Below the pieces are notes generated by a model. That model was given only the letters and a program-made list of their open reading frames with translations, did no database searches and was not told the origin of the DNA. A program made the translations under genes and the position numbers. Positions 5,296-53,634 of a DNA stretch of 64,000 nucleotides are shown here, in pieces (position 1 is the stretch's first letter; each line of letters opens with the position of its first letter). The stretch is from Geosiphon pyriformis uo1 (Eukaryota > Fungi > Glomeromycota): contig JAAOMT010000512.1 in assembly GCA_016748015.1 (NCBI GenBank), positions 1,312,893 through 1,376,892 of the forward strand, read 5' to 3'.

Positions 5296-6314
5296 TAAAA
5301 ATTAAAAATTAAATAATAATAATTAATAATTGGTTAAATAATAAGTAATAAAATATAAAATCACAATATATATTAATTAATAATAAAAATTATAAAAGTA
5401 ATTTTATGTTTTTAATAATTTAAATTTTGTCTAATAGCTTTAAAATAAACTTTAAATAATAATATAAAAATTAAATTAGTCTTTAAAAAAAATTTTATAA
5501 CAGATTTAAATAAAAAACACTTATAAAATTTTTAAAAAACATTATTATTTTAATATAAAAACCATAAAAATTCTCAAAATTAATTGTAATTTAAATTAAA
5601 TTTTAGATATTTGTATAGCAAAAAATTAATTTTATAATAATAGCTAAATTTAGTAAATTATATTACTATTTAAAAATTATATTATTTAATAATTTAAATA
5701 AATTAATATAAAAAAGCAAATACAATTATTAAATTTTTAAAATATGGTTTTTAAAAAACAATTTTAAATAAATAGTTTACATATTCGGTTTTTTTAATAT
5801 TATATTTTATTATAAATATTGTATTTAAATTGAATTTTAAAACTAAATATATTAATTATTGATGTTATTTATATTAATTATTCTATTTTTAAAATAAATT
5901 ATTAATATACTTATTGATTTAATTATTAATTTGATTATTAATCTAATTATTAACTGAATTATTAATTTTTTTGAAAATATATGAACAAAACTTTTTTAAG
6001 TTATAAAAAAGTATTTATATTTAAATTTATACTTAGATTAAATAATTTTAAATTATAATTATTTTCTTAATTACAAAATTAATACAATAATTTTAACTTA
6101 TTTATGTTCTTAATCTTATTTTTTTTAATTTGTATATTGTTAATTTTTATAAAACATATTAAATAAATATTTACTAAAAAATACAAATAATATTTGTTAT
6201 TAAATTATAAAAGTGTTAATATAAAAAATATAATTATAACAAAACATTTTTGGTAAAATTATATTAAATTTTGGGTTTTATAAATTTAATTATAGTGAAA
6301 AATACATTGTTATA

Positions 6315-6400: not shown

Positions 6401-7414
6401 TAATAAAGTAAAGAAATAAACAACTATAATAAATAAAGCATTTAAAAACATTAATTTGAATCTTATATAATTATTTTATTATTGAAATATTATTTAATCA
6501 AACATTTATTTATGTATTTTATTTTTAAAATCTTAAATAAATCATTGTTAAGAAATTAATCAATTGTACAAGACCACATTCTCTCATTTGAATACTTATC
6601 CTCCCTCAACTTCTAAAGCAATAGGAAAATTGGATGGATTAGCCAATTAGCAGAATAACATGACATATCACCAGCCGTCGTAAACTTTTCTCCTCTGTTA
6701 CTTTTTCTGAGTTTAACGGTTGATTGAATCCGAGGTCACGCGATATTTAATTTATCAGAATGATAAGTATTTGCGCATGTCTACATGTTAGATAAACACC
6801 ATACTCGAATGTTTCAGCATTTTTGTATAATTTCATAGATTGAATAGCTTCTCACCCTTATTAATGAACATAGCTCCTGAATATTTATATATCAAAAGTG
6901 AAAAAATGAAAAAGTATAATAACAAATAATAATAATAATAATAACATTGATTACCTTTCCAATGTGATTTCTTCTTAAATTTTATTGCTACTTCCTATAT
7001 ATTTTATATTTACTTCTTTTATATTCCATTTTACCCTACTCCACTCATCAATCCATCAATATAGGTTGGCTGAACACCAATTATTCTTATTGATACTCAG
7101 GGCACTCGTTACTATCATGAGTTTTTGGTTTCCATGGTGTGGGTGCGTTATTATGTTTTCAATAAATAGCATTTTAAAAAGGAGTGTTTCTTTTTAAAAG
7201 CTTTTATTGATAGTATGTTTAGAAAGTAATATTTAAAAGGCGGAGTTCGTATTTATGCTGTTTCTCCATCAAAGTATTATTAGCTATAATCTTTTAAAAC
7301 GGGTTTAACTATTAAGACGAATCATCATAAATTAAAATTTTAAACTAGCATTGTTTATCTGATCTTATCCCCAATACTATAAATCATACAACTTTAATAC
7401 TTTCTTTCATTGAT

Positions 7415-9858: not shown

Positions 9859-10129
9859 AATTTTAAAGTAGGATAGGAAATTATTCGAAATCCTTATTTA
9901 ATATCATCAGACCATAAAAGGTTATCGTGATTGGCTAGCTTTCCTGTTTTAGAAAGTATTTCCTCGACCACAGCATTAAAAATCTTGAAATTTAAATTAA
10001 ATTTTCATCATCATATTTTTGTAGGAAAACTCACTTTTATATACTAAAAAAGTTCAATTAAAAATTTTTTATTAAATATCATTGTTTGCTAAATTAAATT
10101 TTTTATGTAATGTTATTTTTTTATTGTAT

Positions 10130-10520
10130 TAACAAGTGTGACCTAAAGTTATACAACATACAAGCTATAACCAGTTATTCAGGCTGATTAAAACTACACT
10201 ATACTCCCAAAAGGCCTTATACTATCAAGTAAACAACAATCACAGATAAAAACATTAAAAACCATGTAATTAACAGCATTTATACTAAAATAAATCAACA
10301 AACTTCTAAAAAAACTATTCATGTAAACATTTATTACATTAAAACAATATAATAAACCAGTAATATTAAGAATTATTAACTTTTTAAACTTAGTTTTTAA
10401 TTTTGCATTAGAAAACCAAATATGTTTATAATAATTGAATGTCAAACTATACATTAAGCCAAGAATATTTATAGTTGTCATTTTAAAAACAAAAAAAGCT
10501 TTACAAATTTAACATATTAT
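10130..10520 (-). mobile_element. Decayed LINE 3' end (related family) grading into AT desert
   Basis: The minus strand after the ORF 10194-10481 stop reads ttttaatcagcctgaataactggttat, matching the LINE 3' UTR hairpin region (ctaattggtctgaatagctggtcat in the 38.6 kb copy). G+C falls progressively to the right. Confidence 0.6.
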
Positions 10521-13500
10521 GTTTTAAACATCAAATTTTTTATTAATATTATGTAAATATTATTATTATTTTTGGTTTAAATTAACAATTATAATATTAA
10601 AAACAAAACAACCATAATATTAAACAAAAACTTTTATCTATGTATATATTTATTAAAAATAAATAACTTATTAACCAAGTTAAATATATATAAAAATACA
10701 TAATTAGAATTTTTTTTAATATAATTAATATTTAAATAATAAAGATTATACAATTTTTTTTAACAATAATTAATAATTTTTAATTATAAAATTTTTATTA
10801 AATACATATACAAATTAGTTATTTTTTAACTAATAAAACCAAATTTAAAACTTTTATTAAAATAATATATAATTATAAATTTAAATTCTATATTTTAAAT
10901 TAATATTATGTTAATAAAAATTACAAAAAATTTTCTATTAAAAATAATTAAAATTATTATATAATATTTTAATAAGATAATAAATATTGTTAAATATTTT
11001 TATATTATTTATTTTAATAATTTTTTTTAATATTTAATAATAAACAATATTTAAAAGCAAAAGTTTTATTAATTAACATTAATTATTATATTTTTAACAA
11101 TATTAAAATGTTTTTTAACTTTAGATTAATTTACAATTTTTTTTTAATAATATTAATTATATAATTATATATTAATTTAATATTGTTTTAAAAATTAAAC
11201 AATTCTTTTATTATTTTAGATTTATAATAATTTAAAACTGTTTAATTATTTAAATATATATTAATAACACTAATTTAAATACATAATTTAAAACCAAAAC
11301 AATAATATAGAATTTAATTAAAATAGATAATAAAATACTAAACATATCAATTTTAATACTTAAATTTTAATTAAAGAAAAAATTATTTGTAGAAATTATA
11401 TTACTAAAGTCTTTACATTAATTAATTAATAAAAATTTAAAAATAATTAAAAATCAAACTTATTTAATATATAAAAAACTATTTTATTCTAATATGTTTT
11501 AACAAATTAATTAAAAACTAATTTTTTAAAATTAAATTTTTTTTGTTAATAAAAAGTTTTAATTATATAACTTTTATTAAACACAAAACTTTATGTATTT
11601 ATTTATACTATTATATATTTTTAAATTTATAAAACACAGTTTTTGCAAATATTTTATTAGCAAAAAAAACAATAATACTTTTTAATTTAAAAATTTAAAA
11701 AGTTATTTAAATTAAGCTTAATTAAAACTAAATTATAATTGTTATTAAAAAAAACTAATATTTTATTTTGTATTATATTTATTAAAATTTTTTTTTATTA
11801 TAATTATTAATCTAATTTTTAATTTGATTATTGACTTAATTATTAATTTTTTTAGTAATTATATAAGTAATAAATTTTTCAATTATAAAAAAACTTAAAA
11901 TCTAAATATTAAATACAATAATATATATTTAATATATTTTTTATATTACTTAATTTTTTTTCCAATTTTCTATTTTTAATAATTTAAATATGTGTAAATA
12001 AAAGATTACTTATTGATATTTACATTTTTGATTTTTTTGATTTGTAATATTAAAATTAACTTAAAATACAATAATATTTGTTATTAATATTAAAAATTAT
12101 TAATTAAGATATAAAATAATAATAGTAATATTATTTTGTAATAATTACAAACTATTTTTTTATCTTTAAATTTTTTAGAAAAAATTAAATAATTATAATT
12201 TTAAAACCAATTATATATATATTATATTTTTATAAATTTAATTTATTTTTTTGATTATTTCTATTATTTTTAATAGTTTTTTTTGTTATTTATTAAGTCA
12301 AATTTATAGTATAAAATTTAATTATTAAAATAAACAACTTATAATTAAACAAAAATTTAATCAGCAAAAATTTATTAATAATTTATAAAAAAAACAAAAC
12401 TTTAAACTCAAATTAGTATTATAAATCTTTTTTATTTATTAAATTAAAATTACATTTAAAAAAATTTTTTTTTTTTTTTATAATAATTTAATTTAATTTT
12501 AATATTAACAATTATTTTATTTTTAAAAAAAACCAATAATTTTTATTAAAGATTAAAATTAAAGCAAAAATTTGCAAAAAAAATGACAACAACAAAATTT
12601 AATATTATAAAAAAAACATAAATCTAATTAGAATATTAACTTAATTAATAAACAACTCTAAATTTTTTTAAGTTTAAATATATAAAAAACCAAAAAAAAT
12701 ATTATTAATATTTTTACCAATTATTTAAGCTTAAAATTTTTTATTAAATAGAATCAAAAAACTAATTAAAACAATTTTTTAATATAATAAAATACAATTT
12801 AATATTATTTAATATTTTTTAGATCAAAAAAAAATATATTAACAGAATTATTTTTTAAAATAATTTAATAAAAAAATTAGAAATTATATATTTAAAAAAA
12901 TTAAGCTTAGCTTATATTTTAAGTTTTTTAAAATAAAAACTTAATTTAATATAATTTTTTTTAATTTAAAACAAACTATAATATATTAAAATTTTGTATA
13001 AATAACCAAATTACAATTAATAATACAAGTTTTTTTACTTATAAAATTTAAAATATTATTAAAATTATAAACATAAATATTTATTAACAATATATATAAC
13101 AAAATACAATATTTTTTTTTATTTATGATTTTTTGTTTATATTAATCTTAATAATATACATATTTTTTTAATAAAATAAATTATATTAATATAATACAAT
13201 TAATTTTGTTTTAATTTAGTGAATTTTATTATTAAACTTAAATAATACAATAATTATCAATAACAAATACAAATTTTTTTTAAGTAATAAAAAATTAGCA
13301 ATAACTATTTTTAATAAAAACAAAAATAAATTTATTATTATTTTATAATAATTTTATTTGGTAAATTAAAATTTATTCTTTTAAAAAAATTTATTATAAT
13401 AAAATATTTTTTAAATATTATAATTATTAAATTATTTATATAAATTTTTGATGTTTTTTTATTTATTAATTTTAGCTGTTTTATTTTTATTTATATTATT

Positions 13501-16500
13501 AAATTTATTTTGAATCTTATTTGTTTTTTTAAAAAATCATTAATATTATTAAAAGTTTTATTTTTTTTAATATTAAAATTTGTTATGTTTTTGTTTTAAT
13601 TTTGTTTTTAATAAAGTAATTAGTTTTTAAACAAAAATCTTTTTAATTCAAAATATAAAAAATATAAAATAAAAAAACATTTTTTGAAAGTTAAAATAAA
13701 TAAAAATAAAAGTTTTTATAATAATATAATTGACTTTTTCAATTTTAAAATTTAAAAACTTTATAATAAATTAGTTTATATATTAAAAAATTGTAATTTT
13801 TAATATTTATAGTAAAATTTATTATTATTATTATAATTATTAAAATTTGTAATACTTTTAATTTTAAATTAATAATATTCAAGTTAATTAAAAAACTGTC
13901 TAATAAATTTTTATTATTTAAAAATATAAAATAATTTAATAATTTATTGTTTTTTGGTTTTTATTATATGTAAAAATTATTATTTATAATTTAAAAAATA
14001 TTATTATGTTTAATTTCTTAATTATTTATTAATTTAAATATTTATATTTTTTTATTTAACAAGTATAATTTAATTATTATTTATTGTAACATAATTTATA
14101 AAAAATTTTAAAATAAGTATAATTTATGTTTTTTAATATATAATTAGTAACTTAAATTAATTAACACTATATTATATATTAATAATACGTAAACCATTTA
14201 TAATTATATAAAAAACTAATTACAAATCAATAATAAAACCAAAATTAATAGGCTAATCTTAAGCAAAATATTTTTATAAAAAAGTTTTTTAAAATTAAGT
14301 ACTATAAAATCATAAATATTAATTAAAATCAATTTATTAATAATAATTAAACTCATTTTTTTACAAATAATTTTTAGCTTAAAATTTAGCAATAAAATTT
14401 TTACTTTATAATATATTATTATATTATAAACAAAATTTTACTTTATAGTATATTATTATATTATAAACAAAATTTATTATATATAAATAGTTTTAATAAT
14501 ATTTTTAAATATTATAAATAATTTAAAAACCCAATTTCTAAAAACGAAACTTTTAATAATAATTATGTAAATATAATTATTAATAACAATATTATAAAAC
14601 AGTTAAAAAACAAAAAAGTTTATAAATAATTATAGTAACAAATAGTTTTTATACAAAGTTTTTATAAAATAAATATAAAAACTAGCAATATTGTAATTTA
14701 ATAAATTAGTTCTAAATAACTATTGTTATTTAAGTAAAAAATCAATTTAATTATAAAAAAATATATAATTAATATATAAGATATGCTGCAATAAAACCAG
14801 ACAAAGTAAATATTTAATTATGTAATATAAATGAGAAGCTAGTGTGGCTGTAAGTTAATTAATTTGATTATATTTTGATTATTTCGGTTATAACTACAGT
14901 TTATATTTTAAGTTGTTATTATATGTCTTCAAGTTGATTAGAATAGACTTTTACTTGAATTATAATATGCTTAATATAGGATTATGTTTATATAAAAATA
15001 TAAATATGAAACTAATTTTACATTAAATTGACTATAGAACCAAAAAAGTACAACACAATTAGAAGCATTCTAAAAAAAAAACAAAAAAAAAAATTGCTTA
15101 ATACATTTTTAAAATGAATGACATTAAAACTTTTAAGGAATATTTACATAAAAAAAATCACTTATGAAATTTATCAAGAGGAAAAGAAAATAATAAATAT
15201 TAAAAAAAGAAAGCAGGATAAAGATGTACTATTATTATTAACAAATAAAAAACAAAAATATTTGAATGAAAAAATTTAATGCAAACAAATATACCATCTA
15301 TTTTCAACTTAATAAGATTTCTAAACACAATATTTTAATGTTCCAAACTTTTACTGTGAATACAAAGTTCTTTTGTTTTTAATGCATGTACTATTAAAAG
15401 ATGAATTAATCACTAGATCTAAATGAAAGTTTAGGGAAGACATCGTTAATTACAGGTAAAATACATTAAAAATATGAAAAGTAATAAAAAGAAAACATCA
15501 AATAAATTATTAAGATAGAAACTGTTTAATTAACGAATCAATTATTGCATACAATTTGATTAGTATCTAATGAACTTATAAAAATAACACAATTCACATC
15601 TAATTTATTAACATTAATTAAATTTAAAACTTGTTATTAAAAACAATAAAATAAAAAATTAAAGTATTTTTTAACATAAATAATAGCAAAGTAGTTTTAA
15701 TCAACTATTTAATAATAAATTTATTATATTAGATTTATTTTATTGTTTTTATGTTTTATAATTTTTAATTATCTTAACAACATAAACAGAATTTTTATCA
15801 ATTAATATTAATCAACAAAAGACCAAAAAATTAGCTTGTTTTAATTTAATATAATCTTTTTTTATAGTATAATTAATTGTAATTAGATTAATATAATTTT
15901 ATAAAATTTAAACAAAGCTAAAAAACTTACTTTTTTATAAATATTTATGAGAATTTTTTAATAATTATAATTTGATTTGATAATATGTCTAATTTTTTAA
16001 AATTATTATTTATTAATATTTTTTTATTTTTAACCAATATTATATCTTTAACCAAACTAGATTTTAATATAAATATATTAAATTAATAATTTCTTAAAAC
16101 TATTTACTAATAAAAACAATTTTTTTATTATTTGTAATTTTTTTATAAAGTTTTTTTATTTAATAATCAAAAAATTAATATATTTAATACATAAAATTTT
16201 TTAACAGTAATTTTTAATTTTTTTTTTGATTAATATAAACTTTTTTAAATTATGCTTGGAATTAGTTTTTATGTTATTAAAAATACCAAAAACTTTAATT
16301 TTTATTGTTTAAAAACAAGATAAAAAATAAGTTGTATTATTAATAAAAAATAATATAACTTTTATAATTATATGTTTTTTATATTAACAGTTTTATAATT
16401 TAAAAATAAATATTATTTGTACTTTTTAGTAAATATTTATTTAATAAATTTTTATAAAAGTTAACAATATATAAAAAAAATAAAAAATAAAAAATAAACA

Positions 16501-16914
16501 ATAAAAATAAATAAAATTGTTGTATTGATTTTATTAAGAAATTTAATTGAAAATAAATGTAGTTTAAAAATAAATTGATTGAAGTGTAAAATATTTTTTA
16601 ATTAATCAGATTAATAATTAGATCAATAATCAAGTTAATAACCAAGTTAATGATTAAGTCAATGATTAATCAAATTAATTAAATTAATAACTAATTCTAA
16701 ATATAAGTTGATTAATACATATAACTAAATATAATTGGATAATTAAATAAATTAAAAACTAAAAGATTTAATTATAATACTACTATTATTGTTGCAAAAA
16801 AACTTTAAAAATTTAAATTATAATCAATAATAAAATTATTATTTCTTTTAACAACTTTGTTTTATGTTGTTTAGATTGGCAAAAAATGTTAAAAGAGTTA
16901 AAAAAAACAATTTT

Positions 16915-16950
<36 letters not shown>
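10520..16950. other. Large AT desert, probable nested hypermutated transposon fossils
   Basis: Many 60-nt lines have only 2-5 G+C. Contains fossil 12-bp tandem repeats shared with 5911-5968. Confidence 0.7.
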
Positions 16951-16953
<3 letters not shown>

Positions 16954-17250
16954 TCAAAAATGTTTTTAAAATTTTTAATTAAAAAAAATTTTTTTTTAAC
17001 CAGTGACGCTTAACTATTTAAATTCAAAATCAGTTTTTTAATTTTTAATTTTTTAATTATGCAAATATGTGAAAAAAATTATTGATATTTTTAGGTGGAT
17101 CTATTTTTTATTTTTCAAAATTTTTAATAAATAATTGATTAAAGAAAAAAACAAGAGTATAAATATTTCATTCTTAAAAGTGTGAATAAGTCAAACAATT
17201 TTTTTTTTTAAGCGGGAAAATAAAATTTTTTGTATGCAAAAGATCATTAA

Positions 17251-17304: not shown

Positions 17305-18054
17305 GTAGATCCGGAAAAATTAAAAATCTTATTTAATTAATATGTTTCAATAATATATGGTTCAAATTTCAAAAGATAATATATAGACTAAATTGAATGA
17401 GTTTTTTCAACGTCCTTAAAAAGGGGGTTGGGATATCAAAAAGGGATGGGGTATCAAAATTCTTTTTTTAAACTAAATGCTTTGAAAATTTATTGTCAAT
17501 ATTTTGATGTATCAAAAATGTAAAATTGTTTAGAGAATAGTTGAATTAAAAATTTGGAAAATTATTATCCGGGAATCGGTCTCTTTTTCGAAAAAATGAC
17601 AAGAGAAATACGATTTGAAAGTGAAGAAGGATTTTGTTAAAAAAAAATTTGTATCAATATTTTTATAATATCAAATGGAGGTATAGTACAAGTATCTATC
17701 TATTTGATAAAGTTTTATAATATCCGGCAATTTCTCAGACTATGGTATCATGGTAAAGAGGGGATTAATCATCGGTATATAGGAAAAGACGACAGAACTA
17801 TGGAAATTGATTTGTAACTAATTACTCAAAATATTTTCTTAAATTCGTTTAACAAGAGGTTAGGTGATTAGAGGTGAAAGAATAAGACTGGCTAATCTAT
17901 TAAATGACTGAAAATGGTATGATTAAATTAAAAAAGAAAAGGCCAAATAGAGAAACAATAAAAAACTTTAAAAAGCAATGAAAATCTACTTGTAAATGAG
18001 ATCATTTTAACTCATTCACCCATATAGAACATTAAACCATCAAGATGTACAAAT

Positions 18055-18147
18055 TTTGTTGAGATAAATTTATCAGGAAACAATGTAAATCGGATATTTG
18101 ACTACAAAACAACGATCTATTCAGATTCTGATGGGTGGAATGACAGC
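18055..18147 (+). repeat. Dispersed noncoding module family 1, copy A
   Basis: tcaggaaacaatgtaaatcggatatttgactacaaaacaacgatct is homologous to 21203-21304 and to the reverse complement of 19319-19440. Confidence 0.8.
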
Positions 18148-18362
18148 TTTAAAAAATAAACAAGGATTATAAGCACACAACCAGCCTGATTGATGATTGT
18201 CCATGATTTTCTGAGTCAGAGAAAAATAATTTTTGGGTTTCTAAATAAAAATTTCAGGATTTTATATTTTTTTAACAATTTGATTTTTAAAAAAAGTGAC
18301 AAATCAAAATTATCGTCATATTCTTTTTATAAAGTAACTTTGAAATAATAGTAGTAATGATA

Positions 18363-18432
18363 AATCAATTAATCAATTCAATTCAATTCAATTAATCAAT
18401 TCAATTCAATTAATCAATTAATCAATTAATCA
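18363..18432. repeat. (TCAAT/TAATCAAT)n microsatellite
   Basis: Direct reading. Confidence 0.85.
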
Positions 18433-19068
18433 ACTTGATCTTTTTTGTTATTATTTATCAAAAAATTCATACTTTTAAACTTTTCAATTCATTCAAGGGA
18501 AACCGGGGTTGAATTCAAATGTAAAAATACATATAGTGGGTACGTATAATAACCCGCAAAGATTAAAACTCAATTCAAAAACTAAACTATACCTTAAAAT
18601 AGTAAAGCTTTAAAATTCAGACTTTAAACCCCATCCAATCAATTTGATTTAGAGTTCGTTAATTTTACATTACAAGCATGAAATTTTCAAAAATAAATGA
18701 TTTTGAACTCGATATTCCTTCATAATAATCATCATCATAATCATCATCATACTTGGCCAATTAAATTTACCCCAATTTTAGAGCGAAAAATCCAAAAAAC
18801 GGCATTTCCCTTTTTTTCTTCTATAATCTTCATTATCTTAATATGGTAATTTTTGAAAATTTCCTGCTATCAATTGGATGCTTTGATTGGTAACAATTAC
18901 AAAAGGAAATTAAAATAAGATTATTCCGAGAATACATTCATTCCAAAAAAAGCCAAAAAAAAAAACGCCCCGATCCCATTGTAAAATCAATTTGGAAAAT
19001 TAAAATATACCGAACGCCCCGGTGTTTAGACTTGTATTGTGTTTTCAGAACTACTATCGACCACGCAG

Positions 19069-19170
19069 GCACAAATTTGTCAATTACCCTCGGGAATCTA
19101 GAAATTCAATACATCGGCCGACTCATACGCTCCCGAAATCGACATCATGCATACAATCAATAAATCAAGT
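19069..19170 (+). repeat. Dispersed noncoding module family 2, copy 1
   Basis: Shares exact CCGAAATCGACATC (19133-19146) and colinear flanks with 20017-20120. Confidence 0.8.
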
Positions 19171-19318
19171 TTCGCAGAGTTTATTACTATTACTGCTGCT
19201 GCAATCAAAAATATCAGACATTTTTTCTATTTGATCATTCATTCAATCATTCATTCCAATAAAAACGGTGTTATTAATCAATGGCTTTTAGTGCGTGTAT
19301 CGTTTTTTGAGTCTAAAA

Positions 19319-19440
19319 TACGATTCGAAAAATTCCCTTTACTGACATTACCGTCATATATACCGAAAAGATTGAACAGATCGTTGTTTTCTATTTAAAC
19401 GACCGATTAACAACAACCCTGTCTGAATTATTTGAACAAT
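19319..19440 (-). repeat. Dispersed noncoding module family 1, copy C (inverted)
   Basis: Reverse complement reads gacagggttgttgttaatcggtcgtttaaatagaaaacaacgatctgttcaa. Confidence 0.85.
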
Positions 19441-19724
19441 GTTTAAAACCTAAACGTCCAGTCTATCGGTTTAAAATTTTTTTATGTATGAGATAGTGGG
19501 AATTTTAAGAAACGTGTATTACCTTTGTTTTCCTAAATGATTTGATATTATCTTATGGGGGGGGGGCGGGGTGGGAGGTTGAAATAAAAAATTTTCTCAT
19601 TTTTAAAATTTGGAAAAAAAACCATCATATTCAACGCTATTATTATTTCAAAAAAAAATTATTAATTTTATCTACCGTAATAAATCAATGATTTTAAATC
19701 ATACATTGTGAGGTTAGGATAATA

Positions 19725-19900
19725 TAAAATAGAATAGGATAGGATAGGATTGGATTGGATTAGAGTTAGGGTTAGGGTTAGGGTTAATGTTAGGGTTAGG
19801 GTCAAGATTAGGATAGGAGGATAAGATGGGATAGGATAGGTTAGGTTATGATGGGATAGGATAGGTTAGGTTGTGATGGGATAGATGGGGTGGGTAGGGG
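19725..19900 (+). repeat. Compound G-rich microsatellite (GGATA/GGATT/GGTTA) containing interstitial TTAGGG repeats
   Basis: Five perfect TTAGGG units between 19766 and 19801 plus variants. Confidence 0.85.
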
Positions 19901-20016
19901 GGAAGGAACACAAACAAGAAAGCAAGCAAATAATAAACCTTTTAAAAGTTCAAACGCCCAACCAACCATTTGGAATTCTGAACTCGACAATCAAACAATC
20001 GAGTTTTCACGAAACC

Positions 20017-20120
20017 GCATAAATTTCATCAATTCCCCCTTTAAAATCTAAAAATTGAATTAATCGAACGAATTCTCCAGGTCCGAAATCGACATCTTGA
20101 ATGTATCAAATGATCAATTC
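20017..20120 (+). repeat. Dispersed noncoding module family 2, copy 2
   Basis: CCGAAATCGACATC at 20083-20096 with flanks colinear to copy 1. Confidence 0.8.
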
Positions 20121-20603
20121 ATGTACACAATCAAATCATAGTTAAATCTGGTTTTCCTCGTACACTCAGCACAGATATTTAAAATAGGGCACGTGCATAA
20201 AAGATTTGAGTATTTGAATCGGTGATGCCATTAAATTTTATTGATGATGGAAAACGTGCACTTTTATAATGGGGCTAATCGAAATTTAAGCTCGAAAAGA
20301 GCCGCATTTATCAAACTCTCGAGATTCCCAATTTTTTTTTTATCCGTAACTTTTGTACACATTGGGATAAAATTTAACGTTTCATCATCATCATCATTTT
20401 AAAAAGGTGGTGATGGTTTTTTAAAACAAAAAGAGTTATTTCTCGTTTTTACATTTATAATTTAAATGAGGGTTTCTTTTTAAAGTTAAAAATTACCATC
20501 ATCTTTATAAACCTGGTCTGGAATAATGGCGATTTTTCTGGAAAATTCCAATTTTTTATTTTGACTAGTGAAAATTTTGGAATTTTTACATAATAATAAT
20601 TAA

Positions 20604-20646
<43 letters not shown>

Positions 20647-20896
20647 TATTCACAACAGTCAAAATGTTAAAAGATCCTTTTCGTTTCCGAAAACGGTATT
20701 TCATTATACAAATCGGTATGCGCGAAAGAAGAGAAAAAATTCCAATTTTTTTGGCCATATAATGTCAGACTCATGGTCAATGTGCATAAAATGATGTAAC
20801 TAGCACGTGATTTAAAAATAAACCGTTAGATGATGATGGAGCACCACTACCATAATGTTCATTAATTCATTCATCAACAAATATTATTATACTTTA

Positions 20897-20927
<31 letters not shown>

Positions 20928-21202
20928 GATTTAGATTTAGATTTAGATTCTATTTCATAAATAGATCCTTATTATTATTATCAGAAGTGATAGACAAATA
21001 TGTGTATGATTAAGATAATTGTACAGATTCTATTGTCCGGAACATTGTAAAATTAAAAAAACTAAAATGACTAACAATAAAAAATAAAAAAAAAGCATCA
21101 TTTCTTTTAAACATGGTTTCACATACAATATTAAACACATTCACAAGCATTTCCGAAATTGGCAAAGCGTGATTACCGCATTTATGTAATACAAATGTGA
21201 GG

Positions 21203-21304
21203 TTTGTTGGGCCAAATTTTGTCAGGGTCATCGTTAATCGGTTGTTTGAATACAAAACAACGATCTGATCAAATTTTCTAAGGACTATCTGATAGAACGA
21301 CAGG
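21203..21304 (+). repeat. Dispersed noncoding module family 1, copy B
   Basis: gtcagggtcatcgttaatcggttgtttgaatacaaaacaacgatctgatcaa. Confidence 0.85.
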
Positions 21305-21398
21305 CTGTCAATAGAGGTAGTTTTTTTTTGTGTGTGTGTGTCTACTATTAGAACTGAACTGATCCTGGGTGATCAATCATCTAGAAATTTTTTTTTTT

Positions 21399-21413
21399 GT
21401 GTGTTGTTGTGTG

Positions 21414-21448
<35 letters not shown>

Positions 21449-21450
21449 GT
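21399..21450. repeat. (GT)n microsatellite
   Basis: Direct reading. Confidence 0.9.
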
Positions 21451-21869
21451 TTAACACCAGTACCAGTACCCCGCACCTGTCTAATTGAAACCTTTTTTTT
21501 TAATGGTAGGCAAGTGATTTAGAAGTTCTTTTTACTACTATCTTCCCAGGAAAGAAAATTTTCAAAAATATTTTATTTTATAAAAATTTAATATTGAAGA
21601 TAATTTATGTGAAAATAATTTTTATAATAATTTTGAAATCTCAAATAATTTAAATATTCAAATAGAAAATCTAAAAAAATTTCCAAAAAAAATTTAATAT
21701 AATAAAAAGAAAAATTTTTAAATCATTTTTGTCTTGAAATTTTATCCAAAATAATATCATTGATTTTTTTTTAATAATATAATAAATTCTTTTAATGAGA
21801 TAAATTTTTTTTTGACTTTTTTCTCAAAATCATAAATATTCCTTATATGCAATGGAATAATAAATAAAT

Positions 21870-21935
21870 AACCAACCAACCAACCAACCAACCCAACCCA
21901 ACCCAACCCAACTAAACCAAACCAAACCAAACCAA
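21870..21935. repeat. (AACC)n/(AACCC)n/(AAACC)n compound microsatellite
   Basis: Direct reading. Confidence 0.9.
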
Positions 21936-22769
21936 AGAATCGTATTTATAATTTTTTTTCACCAATTTCAAATTCTGTGCTAAATATGTGATTCTTTTTA
22001 ATCATATATAGTACAATGGACGTGTGATCAACGATTGTAAAAATAAAAATTGTTTCATGATTAAAAATTATTCAACATTTCCCTAATATCGATTAATTAG
22101 CATTCGGGAAAATAAAAAAATCACTCCACTTGATATCCCTAATTCAGTTTTTCAGCCTTTTCGGCGGGATCTTGTCCATTTCAGCCTTGAAAATCCCCAA
22201 ATCAAAAATACAATGTTTTCCCAAATGTCTAACCAAAAATCTGCATTAAAAAAAAACTCTAAACTAAGAATTTCCCATCAAGTCAAAAAGTACACACAGA
22301 CATTTTTTTTCCAAAGATAAGTCAAAGATAGGAAAATCAAATCGTGAATTTGAAAATCAATACAATTCATCCAACTAGGTAATATTATGGCTAGGACGAG
22401 TCTGGGGAGTTTTTTTTTTTTTTTTTTTTAATTTATATTGTTGTAAATTTTCCTTTTAATATAATATAATGTAATGTAAAAATTTTTGATAACATGAGAC
22501 ATTTCACTTTTTTTTTTTTTCATTTTTTCATTTTTTCATTTTTTTTTTTTTTCGCCCTTTGAAACACTCAAAAGACTTGGATTCATGTAAGACAAGAAGC
22601 ACCACTCCTGAATCTTAGTTGACATAACATCGGGGGTTTTTTTTTTAAAAATCCTACTTTTTAATTGATAAAAATTTTTTTCTATATTCGAATCGATTTT
22701 TAAAACCAGACTTTCCACACCATCTTTTTTCACATACTGGTAGAAATACCTGATGATAAATGATAAATG

Positions 22770-22844
22770 ATGGATGATGATGATGTTGTTGTTATTATTG
22801 TTATTGTTGTTGTCGCTTTTGCTGTTGTTGCTGTTGTTATAGTT

Positions 22845-22888
<44 letters not shown>

Positions 22889-22985
22889 TGTTGATATTAG
22901 GTTGTTTTTTTTTCTTATAATTTAATACTCTAAAATGCATCATCATCATCATCATCATCATCATTATTATTATTATTATTATCAT
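22770..22985. repeat. Trinucleotide microsatellite cluster (GAT, GTT, TAG, CAT, TAT)
   Basis: Direct reading; explains spurious ORF 22536-22985. Confidence 0.9.
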
Positions 22986-22988
22986 TTA

Positions 22989-23068
22989 TGATCGTTTAAG
23001 GACATACTGATCAAAATTTCCTATGATATCTCAAATTACGACGCAGTAGAAAGGGTTTTCGAATCGTA
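22989..23068 (+). repeat. Dispersed noncoding module family 1, degenerate copy D
   Basis: tcgtttaa...ctgatcaaaatttcctatgatatct matches copy B (ctgatcaaattttctaaggactatct); cagtagaaagggttttcgaatcgta matches copy C (cagtaaagggaatttttcgaatcgta). Confidence 0.6.
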
Positions 23069-23365
23069 AAAATTGCTCATATTTTTTGTTTTCGCGTTTT
23101 TTTTTTTGTTTTTTTTTTTGTTTTTTAAATTCAAATCAATTTTCTTCTATTTCTTTCTCGTACTTTTTAAAAATTTATACAATACTTTATCGGTCATCTA
23201 AGAGTTTATCATCATTTTGTTGTGGATTTTTATTTAAATCCTCATAAATTTTCTCACTTGATTTCCATTAAATTTCTCTTTAGCAAAAAGAAAAATTTTT
23301 TATAAAAAAAAATAAAAAAAAAAAAAAAAATTTAACACCAATAAGAGTAATGATAATAAAAATAA

Positions 23366-23411
<46 letters not shown>

Positions 23412-23731
23412 TAATAGTGATAATAAATCAACAATTCGTTAATAAAAAAAAATTTTTACCTAAAAAATCTGATAATTTATATTATATTCTATTCTAAAAA
23501 TCAACTTAGTTTATCAATATATATATATATAAATATATATTGATTTTTTTTTTTTAAACTATCAATAAATTTAAACTAAAAATTATCGTAAAAAAAAAAA
23601 ATTTTATTTTTATTTTTTTTTTTAGCATTTATACAACCCAGATCCTGAACCGAGTGAAACAATTCTGTCAGAAAAGAAAAACAAAAAATAAAATTGTGCC
23701 TATTGGATTTTTTCTTTTTCAGCACTTTTCT

Positions 23732-23766
<35 letters not shown>

Positions 23767-25002
23767 TCTCTCTCTTTTCAAACCAAAAAAATAAAAAAGC
23801 CATCTTTTTTTCGTTTACACTTTTTTTCACACTTGCCACTCACACTCACCCACTCACCATTGTGGCTATTATATTAATAAAAAACATAAAAACTTTAATT
23901 TTTTGTGGCTATTACAACGAAAATAATAGTAACTTGATCCTTTAAAGAAAAACCCTCACCCAGAAATATTTATTACTCATCACTATACTCATTTATCCAT
24001 CTACTTTTTGCTGTACAAATTCCCAATTCTTCCAGAAAGGTAAATAAAAAAAACTATACTATTTTCTTTTCTTTTAATTTGTCACGTGTCTCTTTCTCTC
24101 TCCCTCTCTCTGTCTCTTCATTTCTTTTCTTCATTTTTCAAATGTGCATATCTTTTTTTTTTAAAAAAAAAATAAAAAAAAAAGTAAAAAAAAAAATAAA
24201 AAAGTATCACTCCCTTTTTGTTGGTCTTTCATCATAATCATGTACTCTATCTATTATGTATGGTATCCTCTATAATTTTCCGAAACAAAAAACATGTATA
24301 TATATACCCTCGTCTTATTGTGTCTGCTTGTATGTTTGTCTGTCTGTCTTGTTTATGCTACTTTTTGCCGTACATAGAGGAATACGTATATATCATAAAA
24401 AGATATTAAAACTCTTACGAAAATCTACTCAAAATCTTATATTATCGTCTAATGTACCATCACCATTTTGAATCAATCAATAATTATCGATTTCGAGTTT
24501 CATAAGCAATTCGCTATAGTGCGCAACCCATTAAAAAATAAAAAAAATAAAAAAATTCACGCTCACGTTCTCTCTGTTAATTTCTCCACTCAGGACACGT
24601 ATCGAAAAGAAAAATAATTATTCTTACTTCAAAACCCCCCGCATAATTGTTATCTAAGCAGTTAAAATTATAAGGTATGTTTTTTTCTCGGATTATTACT
24701 TTAATTAGAGCGCTTTTATTTTTTCGGCTTCTTCCTTCTATCGTTTTGTTGCTTTTTCTTCGAGTCAACGTGCTCACAAATTTTTAAAAAATTCCCGAAT
24801 AAGCCATCATGTTATATATTCCAAAAATATTTATCAAATTCTTTCTCCTCCTCCTCCTCCTTCTTCTTATCTTCAAAAGGTTTCTTGGTCTACTATTAAT
24901 TTCAATCAAACTGAAAAAGTCTGGGACAACCAACACACAGACCGTCCCAAAGCATTAAAACCTCTTACTTAAAAAGAATTCAAATCTTAAAAGATTTTAT
25001 CA

Positions 25003-27221
25003 ATGACAAATGCTCCAGGTTTCCCACAAATAAGAGAAATTCTTCGAAAATGCAATCTCATGGAATACTATGAAAGGTTGATTGCCGAAGGCTTTGACGA
25101 CTTGCAATCGGTAAATTTTTTCTTCTTCATTCCTAAAGATAGATAAAATTTGACATAAAATTATGTGTTTTTATTGGGGAAAGAACTCAAAAAAAAAGAC
25201 GTGCTTTTTACTGGAACAACAAAAATCATTGTTACTTTTTTGAAAATGAGCTTGGCAAATTTCAAATTAAAATATGGTTAGTTGGTAAAAAAAAAAAGCG
25301 CAGTACTTGGTAAAAGACACCGACTGACCGACCTCCTGCATACCGCAAGAAAAATACCGTCGACCGAAAAAGCAAAAAAGTTTTGGCACTTTATCAATGG
25401 TGTGTAACATCTTTCTTCCCACGCCCGAGTCACCCATAAATTCTCCGGTTGGATTTTCTGGAAAAACATGACAATATATATTTCCTACACGTGACTTTAT
25501 TTACAATGACTAATATGACAAAATTATTCCTCCACAAAATTTCTAGCTGCTTGAAGTGACTGAAACTGATCTTATTGCTATGGACGTTAAACGAGGTCAT
25601 CGAAGGGTAATTATTTGTTTTTCATCACTCTTTTAAATGGTTAATGATTGATTGATCAATTAAACTAATCTCATCACATCACATCACATTTTAATTCTTT
25701 AAAAAACAGCGATTACAACGAGAAATTTCTACGCTCAAAGGAGTACCTGCATCCTTACCCTTGTACATACCTCCAGGTCCTGCATTAGAAGATCAAACCA
25801 ATACAAATTGTAAGTTATTTTGAACGAATTCACGTGATCCGTAGAGAATTGATTTTTTTGTACACAAACATGTGAATACTCACATTTATAATTTCTGAAA
25901 ATCGTAGCAATTCTACCGCAAGTAACTAGCGACCACGTTCATATGAATAACATTCTTCAAAATAACGCAAAAATGCTGTATGCCAACGTCGCTCCGGTCA
26001 ATTTGAATCGTGGATCTCCAATGTTACCACGAGATCATGCAAGTAAAGAGGATGATCCACGGGATAACAGAGATCCACAAAATAATGAAAATACCAAAAG
26101 AAAATATAAACGTCATCCAAAACGTGACAAAAATGCTCCCGTAAAACCATTATCCGCTTATGTCATGTTTGCTCATCGTGTACGAGAAGAGTATCAGGGT
26201 CAAAACATTCCATTTCCAGACATGGCCAAAATCGTGGGTGATCGTTGGAAAACGATTCCTACAGCGGAAAAGGAAGCGATCGAAAGTGAGGCTGCAAAGG
26301 CTAAAGGAAAGTATCGGGCTGAATTGGAAGTTTATAAGACAACTGAACAATGGAAGGTTTGTACTATTATTATTATTATTGTTATTAATTAATGATTAGT
26401 TCGATTCATTGCTCATTGAAATTAAATATCTTTTTTTATCCATTTAATTTTACCAGCAATATCAAGAATACCTTAAAGATTTTAAGGCAAAGTACGAAAC
26501 TTCATTCCGTGGAGATCTCAAACAAAGAAAACGTTCCAAAATAGAACCATCGCCGGAACCAGAGAATAATAGCCATTCGGGTTACTCGAGTGCTCGATCC
26601 ACATCACTTGGATACCAGAGTAGTGGTAGTAGTAATTCCAATGGTTGTAATGGTGGTGATCATAATATGCATCTTCACAATCATCAAGGGGTTTCAGTGA
26701 ATAATGGTCCACATATTCCTCACTCGTATTCTGGATCTAATTACAATGTCCCAAACTTTCATCAGAATTGTTATCTTTTAAATTATCCCAACATGTTCGA
26801 TTATAATCCCAATCAATCGAATGGTGGCATCGAAAATTTAAATATCTCAAAGAATCCACATCATCACAATCAACCTCATAATTTTGGTTCGAGACCAACC
26901 AATAATATGACGTCAAATGGTACCTCATTGGCAGATCTATACGCGAAAGATGACGAACAATCACCTTCCATGTCGCAGAATGGTGGTGGTGGTGGCGGTG
27001 GCCGTCGACCCTTTGATGATTCAGGAGTTTCCACAGATAATTTCTCGGCAACATCCAGCAACAATAATACTCCACCACCTGCATCAGTGGAGAGTGAAGA
27101 AACGAACAACGTACTGAACAATAGTGGTAGTAATGGTGGTCAATCCAAACAATCAACGGAACCGTCACGTGCCGGATCAATTTCTGTTGATCGGGCAATG
27201 GTACCACAACCTGTACACTGA
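25003..27221 (+). CDS. SAM-domain plus HMG-box (HMGB/HMG20-type) transcriptional regulator; exons 25003-25110, 25547-25606, 25710-25809, 25908-26356, 26457-27221
   Basis: SAM: IREILRKCNLMEYYERLIAEGFDDLQS|LLEVTETDLIAMDVKRGHRR|RLQREI. HMG box: KRKYKRHPKRDKNAPVKPLSAYVMF...FPDMAKIVGDRWKTI...KGKYRAELEVYKTTEQWK|QYQEYLKDFKAKY. N/S/G/H-rich tail. All introns are GT-AG and keep frame. Confidence 0.93.
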
Positions 27222-28552
27222 TAATTATTAATAGTAATAGGAGTAGTAATCGTGATGAAGATGGTGTTGATGGTGGCAATTAATAAGTGATAAGGAAAAA
27301 AATTGAACAAAAAAGAAATACCGATATGCCTTTACGCTGTGTGTGCACATTTTTCTTCGCTTTTTCTCTTTTCCTCTTCATTACTTTTTCTCTTCCAAAA
27401 AGTTTCAAGTGATAAAATTTTCTTACAACCCCTAACAATCAAAATATAATTAGATGAACTGGAGGAAACAACATAAATTTTTTTTATCACGCTCTTCTCT
27501 TATCTTCAGAGTGTTTTATTCTCTTGATTTTTTTAGCACGCAAATTTTTACCCATTTTTGCTTTTCTTTCCATCCTGCCTTATCTCAAGTACGTCAAGAA
27601 ATCATCGTAGTCGTCGCGAATGATTACAAAATTACTGGTGTCGACTACGATTAATCTCTTTGCGAAAACCTTCCCATTCTTACTCTATAGATTTTATATA
27701 CACTTTGATTTTTTGTTTCCATCAATTTCATGATTTTTTTTCCTTTAATTATTGATATAAAAAAATTATATCACACCTTTTTTCTTTCATTGTTTTCCTC
27801 AGTCATCTCATTTCTCCCTTTTAAATATCTAAGTCATTTTTTACGTAATTCTTAAGCTAAAGGTACACACATTCAAAGAGTCACCGTGTGGATATAGCTC
27901 ACAAGGTGTGTGTGCATATCGCATACGATGTTTTAAACCAAGTTTCTTTTTTGTAAATAAACTGTAAATTTTTTAAAATTTTAAGAAAGTGATCTTGGGG
28001 AGTAACGGTAATATATAGGAAATATATATGGAGTGGAGGAGTTATTTTATGCTTGAAAGGGAATAATTTACCCAATTGAAGTGGTTGTTGACTCGTGGAA
28101 TTGAGTGTTCCTAATTTTTGTTTATTGAGAATATGATCGTGAGGAGGGACAATGAGTTGGGTAATATAACATCATAATAACAAAAAAACTAATAAGAGGG
28201 ACTTTTTTGATTGTTAATTCAATATGTTTGTGTTTTGACCAATTGGGATGATTAAAGACAATAATGTTTAGGAGGAGGATCATGATGATGAGGCCACGAG
28301 AGATGAAATATTGAAGAAAATGATGAAAAGGAAATATCTCATAGATATTAAGCATATATTAGAAAGTGTTGGAAGATGAAATATGAGAGGAAGGTTGCGT
28401 ATTAATGCAGAGTTATTTTTGACAAGAAGGAGAAGGAAGAGAAGAAGGAGGAGAAAGAAGGAAAAGAAAGGAAAATCAAATACACTCAAACTTGAATTTG
28501 ACCACAAACACCGCATCTTCGACTACAACTACCCAAGCAGAAAAGCAGTAAA

Positions 28553-51357: not shown

Positions 51358-52114
51358 GTAATCAATTTTTAATATAAAATTTTATTAGACTTAACATACA
51401 CCTTGAGTTAAATTTGGATAAGTCATAAGCATTTTGTACTGGCTTTAAACATGTGATATCTTTAAATTCATCTTTCACACATGAGCAAATAAAAATATCT
51501 TTGGCGTTAGCTTTTAAAAAGAAAAGATATTCATTGAAAAGAGAAAAGACAGTTTGGGAGAAAACGGAAAACCAACCAACTCAAAGGAAAATATTTTTCA
51601 AGCATAAAGATAATAATGATAGGTAACTCCGAACACAAAGGAGAAAAAGGATTTTTTGAGTTGATAATAAATTATCTTTGAACTGGAAAAAACTCTTTGA
51701 AACAATAGCTCTAATTTATATTTCCAAAACCAAACCGAGTTTAAAAAAGAAAAAAGTCTCCAAAATAGAAAATTCTTATCAACAAAAAGCAAAACAAACC
51801 CTTATTGAATTTATATTTTTGGATTTGTCACATCGTTTGTATTTTACAAAGTAAAACAAAAAATTATGTAGCAAGAAACAACGAAAATATCACATTATAG
51901 TGGTGCTGTTTTTGGCAGCACGTCCCCACATGATATAAAAATATGAGGCTTTAGATAAAAATTTCGTCAATGTAAAATATTTTGAACTACTTTAATTTTT
52001 ATTTTTATTTTCTAAAAAGTAAAACTTTTCCAAAATTAAAGTATGAAATAATTTTAGTTATAAATATGTCTTTACCATGATAAATATTTAATATCCCAAT
52101 CCCTCCTTCGCTTA

Positions 52115-53634
52115 TCAATCCTTATTAATAAGTTGTTGAACCCATACGGTAAGTCGTATAGTGGCAGATGACAAAAAGATTGACCAAAGTACGACACAAA
52201 TAACTTTGAATCGTGATGTATCTGGCACATATATTCTTTTTCGAGGTGTTGTGATGCCAGTACAGTGTGTATCCAGATAAATGTAGAATGAGTAAAGTGA
52301 GTATGTAATGGTATAAGATAATTGGAATGCGTAGAATCTATATTGATATAGTGATGAAATATAGTGATTAAATAATTAATTAAATTTCAAAATTTTAATA
52401 CATGAATTTGATTTCTTTACTTACGCCTTCAGATTATCTACTAAAAGCGTATTTGTAATATTTCCGATAATATGAATAATCGCCGCCAGAATCAATAGTA
52501 TTAAAGGACGTGGATGGTGAACAGACGTCGGGAAAAAATTGTATTGTTCTTCAGGAATTAATTCCCCTAAGGATGAGGATTGTATTTCTCCCTGTTCGCT
52601 GGTAGAAGTAAAGATTGGTAACGATGTGCCGTTCTCTTTGAGATTTTTTTGTGTTCCGTAATATAAACGCGTAAATTGGATTATTAAAGCCCAATCAGAA
52701 CAAAGACCTTTTATACGATAGTGGGTTCATAATTAATTTGAGGGTTCAATTTCATTCAAAATCGACTTAATATAATTCTCACTCACCTTGCCACTTAAAC
52801 CAAAGCCCATCAAAAGGCCAGCTTAAAGTTATACTTAAGATATTCACCAAGATTAAATAGCCAGCTAACAATCCGAAAAAGCCTGCATGACTGGTAACTT
52901 TTCCACCATTGTGCAACACCAACATAATAGCGATCTCGAATACATTGTGTAATGAACCCGTGATCGCCCATAACTTCCCAATATCGAATAAAATATATGT
53001 AACGGAAGCGATAAATGTGATAGACACATATCCGGCCAATAGTCGATTAAATAACGTAGTTGGGAATGCTACTCCATTTTTGGAGAAATAGGAATTTTGG
53101 AGTCCGGAACCCGTTTTTGATGTGTATGAGGTCCATCGAAGGGTGTAATACCCGGAAACTCCCAGGGTTATGAAAGAAAATTCTACAAAGGCTTGATACT
53201 TTTCTGCTTCAAAAGCTAAAACAGGTTTGAATAAAAATTTTCAATTTAATTGGCCTGTATACTTCAAGAAATTTTTCTGACATGGGTTGCAATTAATTAC
53301 TTTTATATGATTTTCAAATTGCAATCTATTAAAGATGCCATCTTTAATTGTGAAGTGCATTTATCTTTGAATTTCAATCCAGAAAACCAATATAATCCAT
53401 TAAAAAAATATACTAATGATCAACTTTTTAAACCGAAATTTCGGCCACTACCCTCGAAAACACTTTTTTTCCTAACAAACCTTTAATAACCGGATGCCAC
53501 GCCGGATAACCAGTTAACTTTGAAGTATCCTGTTCGGGCACGCTCCCCAAATCTTTCGGGAAACTGGCGAATAGTAACACCAACAAAAAAAATATCCCAG
53601 TCACTGCCAAAGTCTTTACCAAGCCTAAACTCAT
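52115..53634 (-). CDS. Uncharacterised multipass membrane protein (about 8-9 hydrophobic segments), about 4 exons
   Basis: Spliced ORF MSLGLVKTLAVTGIFF...WHPVIK|AFEAEKYQ...GSLHNVFEIAIML...DGLWFKWQG|LCSDWALIIQF...AAIIHIIGN...|FYAFQLSY...LINKD*, with GT-AG introns. Confidence 0.8.

Follow-up and report, generated by a model that had tools for sequence, protein, structure and literature searches.

A short non-coding module reiterated upstream of a SAM-HMG gene in Geosiphon pyriformis and conserved in Ambispora: a candidate distal cis-regulatory element

Conserved non-coding elements and distal or 'shadow' enhancers near developmental transcription factor genes of animals and plants are conserved above neighbouring exons, keep their linkage to, and roughly their distance from, one regulator gene even when its neighbours are rearranged, and combine block-wise conservation with flexible spacers, either orientation, and several elements per locus. 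In fungi, UAS elements and phylogenetic footprints (e.g. those from Saccharomyces comparisons) are short words that have stayed conserved while the promoter region around them has diverged, and enhancers several kb from a gene are not the usual pattern. Arbuscular-mycorrhizal fungi are not routinely transformable, and to our knowledge no cis-regulatory DNA has been defined so far in these fungi and their relatives, among which Geosiphon is the only group member living with cyanobacteria; nor do we know of an earlier deeply conserved distal enhancer in Glomeromycota.

Here we describe a repeated module in a window of 64,000 nucleotides of the Geosiphon pyriformis genome (contig JAAOMT010000512.1), the whole stretch of DNA that was analyzed. 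The module shares the above features with the animal and plant elements, and its short conserved words in a diverged upstream region with the fungal ones. It probably regulates the SAM-HMG gene downstream of it in cis, as a conserved distal element of the enhancer or UAS-like kind.

Copies of the module in the Geosiphon genome

Alignment bears out three full copies at the positions reported in a preliminary description of this DNA. Copy A lies at 18055-18147 (+ strand; core at 18081-18143), 6.9 kb upstream of the conserved ATG of the SAM-HMG gene; copy B, which is inverted, at 19319-19445 (- strand; core at 19346-19415), 5.6 kb upstream; and copy C at 21203-21326 (+ strand; core at 21229-21300), 3.8 kb upstream. 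Pairwise core identity among the three is 74-83%, local alignment scores range from 25 to 40 against a shuffle mean of ~10 (p < 0.002 for every pair), and the similarity between B and C spans 19327-19429 of copy B. A five-sequence profile matches copies B and C with E = 1.6e-16 and 4.6e-17, respectively, and copy A, the most diverged of the full copies, with E = 2.5e-13, and the window contains a 31-nt core pattern 3 times (0 expected). The fourth copy that had been proposed, D (about 23007-23069, + strand), stands in part: its 3' half is recognizable (CTGATCAAA...TATCT...ACGAC...TTTTCGAATCGTA), with 23007-23043 aligning with the 3' half of C (p = 0.002) and 23050-23069 with the tail of B (TTTTCGAATCGTA; p = 0.03), but the AAAACAACGATCT 13-mer core is absent and the core profile does not detect it, such that D is a partial and degenerate copy rather than a full module.

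A larger segmental duplication was ruled out by sensitive self-BLAST, which gives only the module and one 86-nt pair. This pair constitutes a second local repeat, R2 (copy 1 at 19069-19152 and copy 2 at 20017-20102, both + strand), whose copies share CCGAAATCGACATC and are 71% identical over 86 nt; no match to R2 was found in the Ambispora upstream regions, so that R2 may not belong to the same system. The CpG observed/expected ratio of the upstream region is 0.97 (gene-like) vs 0.30 in the adjacent degenerate AT-rich tract. Across the 128 Mb G. pyriformis genome, the core pattern with up to 3 mismatches has only 3 matches, all at this locus, and the five-sequence profile returns only copies A-C (E between 1e-13 and 1e-17), with the next match at E = 0.28.

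Conservation in Ambispora and constraint on the core

Using nhmmer with a profile from the Geosiphon copies alone, the core was located in two Ambispora species, both times on the + strand and upstream of the orthologous SAM-HMG ATG: in A. leptoticha at L058:5808-5868, 4.2 kb upstream (E = 5.7e-10), and in A. gerdemannii at L060:2506-2572, 3.2 kb upstream (E = 1.4e-9). A core of ~60-70 nt has been kept 3-4 kb upstream of SAM-HMG, on the gene strand, since the divergence of Geosiphon and Ambispora. The profile scan of this and related genomes that had been suggested at the outset returned a module that is unique to its locus in Geosiphon, and the concern raised alongside it, that relatives might lack the module, is answered by the core upstream of the orthologue in both Ambispora species. 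Copy C is 94% identical to L058:5814-5847 over 34 nt, vs 70-80% for exons, and matches the A. gerdemannii contig with E = 7e-8 (sliding nhmmer); copy A is 83% identical to the Ambispora copies over 52 nt. In sliding nhmmer and tblastx comparisons, the core is the only Geosiphon-matching part of the 6-7 kb Ambispora upstream region. Copy C resembles the Ambispora elements most, whether judged by sequence, position, or strand, and is thus likely their positional orthologue. A GT2-like gene is the upstream neighbour in A. leptoticha and lies ~25 kb off on the other side in Geosiphon; the module has stayed with the SAM-HMG gene despite this displacement.

Conservation is shown for three species of a single order. 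In other orders, the sequence upstream of the orthologue yielded no module in Glomus cerebriforme, Funneliformis mosseae, Diversispora epigaea, or Paraglomus brasilianum (2.4 kb upstream only in Paraglomus); short orthologous contigs (L009, L010, and L059) were left out as they hold too little upstream sequence. Another block, at about -1.6 kb, is conserved among the Glomeraceae orthologues; homology of this block with the module is not claimed. Two metagenome pattern scans gave no match and 47 chance matches (bacterial contigs, 30-61% GC, no flanking similarity), respectively; the patterns demanded AATCGG and a final T, where Ambispora has TATCGG and ...GATCC, and these scans are uninformative on relatives.

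The most conserved part of the core, as in copy C, lies at 21237-21265 (+ strand) and reads ATCGG-TTGTTTGAATAC-AAAACAACGATC. Its two arms, ATCG(G)TTGTTT and AAACAACGAT, make up an imperfect palindrome with a centre of 7 nt; over the five sequences compared (Geosiphon A, B, and C plus the two Ambispora elements), 90-93% of cells retain the palindrome, and 29 alignment columns are invariant in all five. Among A-C, invariant columns are clustered (longest run of 13, AAAACAACGATCT, P = 0.007; sum of squares P = 0.002) and, as had been observed before, the blocks AATCGG and AACGATCT, both CpG-containing, do not vary. Ambispora retains 31/33 of the Geosiphon-invariant columns vs 10/20 of the other columns (p = 0.0004), and columns invariant between the orthologues are in turn retained in copies A and B (p = 0.03 and 0.003, respectively). 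Given that paralogues and orthologues are constrained at identical columns, and that paralogue-paralogue identity (74-83%) is similar to Geosiphon-Ambispora identity (69-81%), these patterns indicate that all three full copies are under selection.

Conservation is block-wise, the spacers are of variable length, and copies occur in both orientations, features that are typical of protein-binding modules. A coding exon or micro-ORF was ruled out, as the lengths of the indels between copies are not divisible by 3, open reading frames are short and differ among copies, and tblastx between the Geosiphon and Ambispora upstream regions found no coding signal.

Transposon, RNA, and promoter readings

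The arrangement of A (+) and B (-) as an inverted pair 1.3 kb apart, and the repeat-derived AT-rich tract adjoining the locus, would fit what is left, without function, of a low-copy transposable element (MITE or terminal repeats) or of a neutral local duplication, and the module resembles MITEs in its length of ~100 nt and its occurrence in both orientations. We nevertheless consider this reading very improbable and already largely refuted. While the preliminary description had named hundreds of dispersed copies with terminal inverted repeats (TIR) and target-site duplications (TSD) as the mark of a MITE, there are three copies in 128 Mb and no TIR or TSD is visible at the copy ends or flanks in the window. 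Similarity weakens toward the copy ends and peaks internally, which does not follow TIR/TSD logic; constraint is position-specific; and the orthologous position is kept in two Ambispora species whose surroundings have diverged beyond alignment. The module is not a MITE, since genome-wide pattern and profile searches match this locus only; a transposon in general was ruled out by the copy number of three together with the orthologous conservation.

It is also improbable that a conserved non-coding RNA, either encoded by the module or extending beyond it, acts via the hairpin ATCG-G-UUGUUU / AAACAA-CGAU. The retained palindrome is compatible with such an RNA, as are its slightly better pairing on the minus strand and one position that has changed on both sides, being G-C in Geosiphon copies B and C and A-U in A. 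gerdemannii, while copy A and A. leptoticha show G-U intermediates on the minus strand; however, variation in the 5' arm is mostly uncompensated and the 3' arm is near-invariant. Fold (MFE) z-scores of the copies are -1.5 to +0.1 on either strand, the consensus fold reaches only about -5 kcal/mol with unfavourable covariation terms (+0.56 and +0.24), and the palindrome pair measures are no better than shuffles, 285/500 and 313/500 of which reach the observed values (five sequences, low power). The covarying outer pair of the preliminary description was lost once the orthologues were added, its helices (60% and 77% paired) are not above shuffles, and the covariation check on five sequences found none beyond controls (low power). 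An undescribed structured RNA/DNA element, which had been offered as an alternative, is likewise not supported, as neither the folds nor the consensus folds of the two strands exceeded controls, and the three explicit pair counts did not do so either. Known RNA families were ruled out, there being no Rfam match at gathering score and no tRNA or tmRNA in the whole window, and opposite orientations at one locus are less in keeping with an RNA gene family than with a DNA site. Only one public run (X1, rated 'probably DNA') contained the stretch, and its contigs form two sharp islands of genome-single-copy sequence, at 19018-19494 (477 nt, depth 30) and about 19691-20341 (depth 81). The first encloses copy B and, since X1 could be RNA, it may speak for a transcribed module, but copies A, C, and D have no X1 contig, and the islands are not conserved in Ambispora. 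The same islands are the basis for a further reading, which we also regard as improbable, in which an unannotated intergenic transcript, be it an lncRNA upstream or a distal, alternative first exon of SAM-HMG, has the module as its promoter or promoter-proximal element, and the module is not a classical enhancer: the first island has copy B at 54-175 nt from one of its ends, and a conserved donor-like word, TTTTAG|GTAA(C/T), follows both Ambispora copies. In Geosiphon copy A, however, this word is not conserved; the X1 contigs show no spliced joint, A and C are again without contigs, and X1 is of uncertain type (RNA or DNA).

The SAM-HMG gene and the regulatory reading

The presumed target, SAM-HMG gene G9A89_019218 (25004-27221, + strand; Pfam HMG_box), has exons at about 25004-25110, 25547-25608, 25704-25811, 25908-26357 (HMG box), and 26458-27221. 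The exons were located separately using tblastn, and the full-length database protein, which contains SAM_1 and HMG_box, was used in place of a joined spliced model. The database model has 33 extra residues upstream of the conserved Met; the ATG of the orthologues aligns at 25003/25004.

Autoregulation had been suggested, on the premise that HMG boxes bind TTGTT/AACAA-type sites. HMGB/UBF-class boxes are generally not sequence-specific, and sequence-specific HMG boxes have Asn where KPLSAY has Ser. The SAM-HMG box carries KPLSAY, and its best 40 PDB relatives include HMGB1, NHP6A, Abf2, TFAM, HMG-D, SSRP1, TOX, and a SWI/SNF subunit; a free-standing SOX, LEF, or MAT box is absent among these 40, the sole sequence-specific entry being an SRY/HMGB1 chimera. 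Judged by its sequence, the box is of the HMGB/NHP6 architectural type, which leaves autoregulation via SOX-type TTGTT sites unsupported. The SAM-HMG protein PaHMG2 of Podospora has been classed as HMGB-UBF (PMC3730723). Within the module, the left TTGTT word of the core is variable (ATATT, TCGTT, TTGTT, TTATT, TTAAT), and the TTGTT words at the left arm and 5' end differ from copy to copy and do not appear in the Ambispora alignment. AAAACAACG is conserved, yet it is not the A(A/T)CAA(A/T)G-type consensus, and the invariant words are AAAACAACGATC and ATCGG, not AACAATG, with AACAA-like words present. These results correct the tempting story in which an HMG protein binds its own TTGTT sites.

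We favour a distal cis-regulatory element, and the reiterated composite enhancer of the preliminary description appears well founded in so far as the module is conserved at the orthologous Ambispora loci and unique to its locus. Such a module would act as double-stranded DNA bound by sequence-specific factors at short invariant blocks, for which we propose GT, ATCGG, TT-A-TA, AAAA-AACGATC, and TC, together with, at a distance that varies, a second block like (G)GTTATCTGATGG. Some of its words presumably resemble GATA-family (CGATC, TGATC, TGATAG) and AACAA-type sites. Amplification in Geosiphon has produced three full copies, in both orientations, and one decayed copy, with constrained positions identical in each full copy, and the extra copies may serve as redundant or additive 'shadow' copies. 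A bolder account is speculative and rather unlikely: that a palindromic composite distal enhancer, kept since the Geosiphonaceae/Ambisporaceae split, is now a three-copy array controlling a SAM-HMG chromatin regulator, or that the hairpin is a new small structured RNA/DNA element.

The module is short and precisely bounded, displays demonstrable purifying selection, and is tied to one conserved regulator gene. It offers a handle for DNA-affinity and one-hybrid factor screens, and a tractable Mucoromycota host could be used for reporter tests of it. Comparison of Geosiphon with Ambispora can reveal distal conserved non-coding elements in these AT-rich genomes.

Set beside the distal and 'shadow' enhancers of animals and plants, the module differs in its early-diverging fungal host (Archaeosporales), its length of ~60-70 nt, and in its conservation being shown across three species of one order only. 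The core contains CGATC(C/T)GATC and more GAT words, which may resemble the paired GATN/CGATN light-response elements of the White Collar complex. Compared with fungal UAS, which lie within a few hundred bp of the start codon, the module is located 3-7 kb away, and it is the whole composite module that is repeated.

Copies of the module in the Geosiphon genome

The window, with 27% GC, is AT-rich eukaryotic DNA of Geosiphon pyriformis. Sequence inspection together with alignment of four stretches identified three good copies of the module upstream of the SAM-HMG gene, namely copy A (18055-18147, +), copy B (19319-19445, -), and copy C (21203-21326, +). Of the four copies listed in the preliminary description, these three are confirmed, while copy D is partial and lacks the 13-mer core, with 23007-23043 matching the 3' half of C (p = 0.002) and 23050-23069 the tail of B (p = 0.03). 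Sensitive self-BLAST gave 73% identity over 73 nt for A and C, and 81% over 63 nt for B and C, which are alignable across ~110 columns; pairwise Smith-Waterman scores (25-40) exceeded all 500 of 500 shuffles for every pair. A 31-nt core pattern occurs three times in the window versus zero expected, and invariant columns are clustered (longest run 13, P = 0.007; sum of squares, P = 0.002).

Within the Geosiphon genome, to which this statement applies, the module is unique to the locus. When up to 3 mismatches were allowed, the core pattern was found only at the positions of A, B, and C in the whole 128 Mb assembly, and copy C as a BLAST query matched only itself and B. A profile (R1) built from the five-sequence module alignment, for which the best 150 of many first-look candidates were scored, likewise recovered only A, B, and C (E = 1e-13 to 1e-17), the next match having E = 0.28.

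Besides the module, self-BLAST returned a single other non-trivial repeat in the region, an 86-nt pair (R2; 19069-19152 and 20017-20102) that is 71% identical over 86 nt, locus-specific, and not conserved in Ambispora. Both R2 copies contain CCGAAATCGACATC, and CGAAATCGA recurs in inverted orientation at 24487, close to the 5' UTR of the SAM-HMG gene. In the middle of the upstream region, GGATA/GGTTA units form an interstitial tract (19711-19892) that follows a G-run (19560-19580) and contains several perfect telomere-type TTAGGG repeats (19764-19800). The tract directly upstream of the module region (10500-17000) has 10% GC, a CpG o/e of 0.30, and a GpC o/e of 2.0, unlike the module-bearing region (CpG o/e 0.97).

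Conservation in Ambispora and anatomy of the core

Orthologues of the SAM-HMG gene were found by searching the whole library with exon 4 (HMMER) and with the full-length protein (word search), and their contigs were taken with as much as 10 kb of flanking sequence. A profile built from Geosiphon copies only matched A. leptoticha contig L058 at 5808-5868 (+; E = 5.7e-10; ATG at 10001) and A. gerdemannii contig L060 at 2506-2572 (+; E = 1.4e-9; ATG at 5750). The position is orthologous, lying on the gene's strand 4.2 kb (A. leptoticha), 3.2 kb (A. gerdemannii), and 3.8 kb (copy C) upstream of the ATG. By BLAST, the A. leptoticha element is 94% identical to copy C over 34 nt and 83% to copy A over 52 nt. 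When 150-nt sliding queries from both Ambispora upstream regions were compared with Geosiphon 17500-25003, the module copies were the only matches; given that the two Ambispora species are mutually alignable across most of this region, the module is the survivor of the deeper comparison. No hidden coding exon was revealed by tblastx of the upstream regions. Since exons of the gene are just 70-80% identical between Geosiphon and Ambispora at the DNA level, the module core is more strongly conserved than the coding sequence. In A. leptoticha, the gene immediately upstream is GT2-like; its Geosiphon homologue is at ~52000-53630 (-) of the window, ~25 kb downstream of the SAM-HMG gene and on the opposite strand. 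The neighbourhood was thus rearranged, yet the module has stayed beside the SAM-HMG gene. On contig L058, 0.85 kb downstream of the element, an inverted sequence (AAAAAACAACGAGCT; 6685-6703, -) weakly resembles the core's right arm (E = 0.47); this may be coincidence or a second copy that has decayed.

Specific positions are evidently under purifying selection: A. leptoticha keeps 31 of the 33 columns invariant in A, B, and C versus 10 of the 20 others (p = 0.0004), and A (p = 0.03) and B (p = 0.003) preferentially keep columns invariant in C and the two Ambispora elements. Because the same positions are kept in old duplicates, all three full copies are constrained and under the same selection. 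The Geosiphon copies nonetheless diverge from each other (core identity 74-83%) as much as from the Ambispora elements (69-81%). The alignment contains the invariant blocks GT, ATCGG, TT-A-TA, AAAA-AACGATC, and TC, with a second, (G)GTTATCTGATGG-like block downstream at a spacing varying by 0-12 nt. The core forms an imperfect palindrome (ATCG(G)TTGTTT - 7 nt - AAACAACGAT), of which the right arm is nearly invariant and the left-arm TTGTT word is variable (ATATT, TCGTT, TTGTT, TTATT, TTAAT). Its GATA-like and AACAA-like words may be leads on the binding factor.

Searches of the 10 kb preceding the orthologues in Glomus cerebriforme, Funneliformis mosseae, and Diversispora epigaea, and of the 2.4 kb available for Paraglomus brasilianum, detected no copy of the module. 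Two metagenome scans were uninformative, as their patterns excluded the Ambispora variants. A different 140-nt conserved non-coding block (84%), ~1.6 kb upstream of the SAM-HMG orthologues, is common to the Glomeraceae F. mosseae (L079, 8310-8447) and G. cerebriforme (L061, 8388-8526); other orders may also have conserved elements upstream of this gene.

Regulatory DNA, structured RNA, or transcript

The module is probably a distal cis-regulatory element of the SAM-HMG gene, conserved in evolution and triplicated in Geosiphon; it would work as protein-bound DNA on this gene, with the Geosiphon copies redundant or additive. That it is a neutral or transposon relic seems highly improbable. A transposon is ruled out by three sites in 128 Mb, no terminal repeats or target-site duplications at the copies, and a conservation peak that is internal, and the many dispersed copies of the MITE contemplated in the preliminary description are not present. 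A small structured RNA is unlikely. Palindrome pairing is retained in 90-93% of cells across the five sequences, with one two-sided change (G-C in copies B and C, A-U in A. gerdemannii; G-U on the minus strand in copy A and A. leptoticha), but more than half of shuffle trials reach the same values. Single-copy folds on both strands were not better than shuffles (z -1.5 to +0.1), the consensus folds at ~-5 kcal/mol with unfavourable covariation terms, and neither an Rfam match nor a tRNA was found in the window. The outer helices previously proposed to covary are 60% and 77% paired and unsupported, and pair counts gave nothing beyond controls. RNA structure of the module is consequently unsupported rather than excluded, because five sequences make a weak test.

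We also find it rather improbable that an unannotated transcript has its promoter or first exon in the module, a reading on which one public sequencing run matching the window (X1; Logan contigs of unrecorded type, which the tool classed as 'probably DNA') bears. X1 contains 28% of the words of 17900-27400; within 17950-23949, its identical contigs are confined to two stretches, 19018-19494 at depth 30, where copy B lies, and 19885-20341 at depth 81, with none on copies A, C, or D. The second island continues ~190 nt into simple repeat, and so spans ~19691-20341. Both islands are single-copy in the Geosiphon genome, so that their depth is not a repeat effect, and sliding queries against Geosiphon revealed no conservation of them in Ambispora. 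Such sharp islands are more in keeping with RNA or an enrichment library than with evenly covered shotgun DNA; they may be unannotated transcripts or enrichment-library peaks, and the sequence around copy B may have a transcribed role. Each island has one R2 copy.

To our knowledge, no cis-regulatory DNA has been defined in this lineage, and the interest of the module lies in this together with its clean, testable 40-nt core.

The SAM-HMG gene and its HMG box

In the SAM-HMG gene (25004-27221, +), exons 1-3 encode a SAM domain and exon 4 encodes an HMG box; the gene product is G. pyriformis G9A89_019218 (database protein P0008; 100% identity). P0008 (526 aa) begins 33 residues before the Met (25004) that matches the start of the Ambispora orthologues, and this N-terminal extension (window 24850-25003) is probably 5' UTR misread as coding. 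The same architecture is present in orthologues across Glomeromycota, Mucoromycota, Basidiobolus, and some Ascomycota; the family is old.

Sequence-specific HMG boxes have Asn where the motif KPLSAY has Ser, and the box of the SAM-HMG gene has KPLSAY. Its best 40 PDB relatives include HMGB1, NHP6A, Abf2, TFAM, HMG-D, SSRP1, TOX, and a SWI/SNF subunit, with no free-standing SOX, LEF, or MAT box among them and an SRY/HMGB1 chimera as the sole sequence-specific entry. Judged by these relatives, the box is of the architectural type, and HMGB-UBF is also the class given to PaHMG2, the SAM-HMG protein of Podospora (PMC3730723); the argument of the preliminary description for autoregulation via TTGTT/AACAA sites has therefore lost its basis. 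Deletion of PaHMG2 gives a wild-type fruiting pattern in Podospora (PMC3730723).
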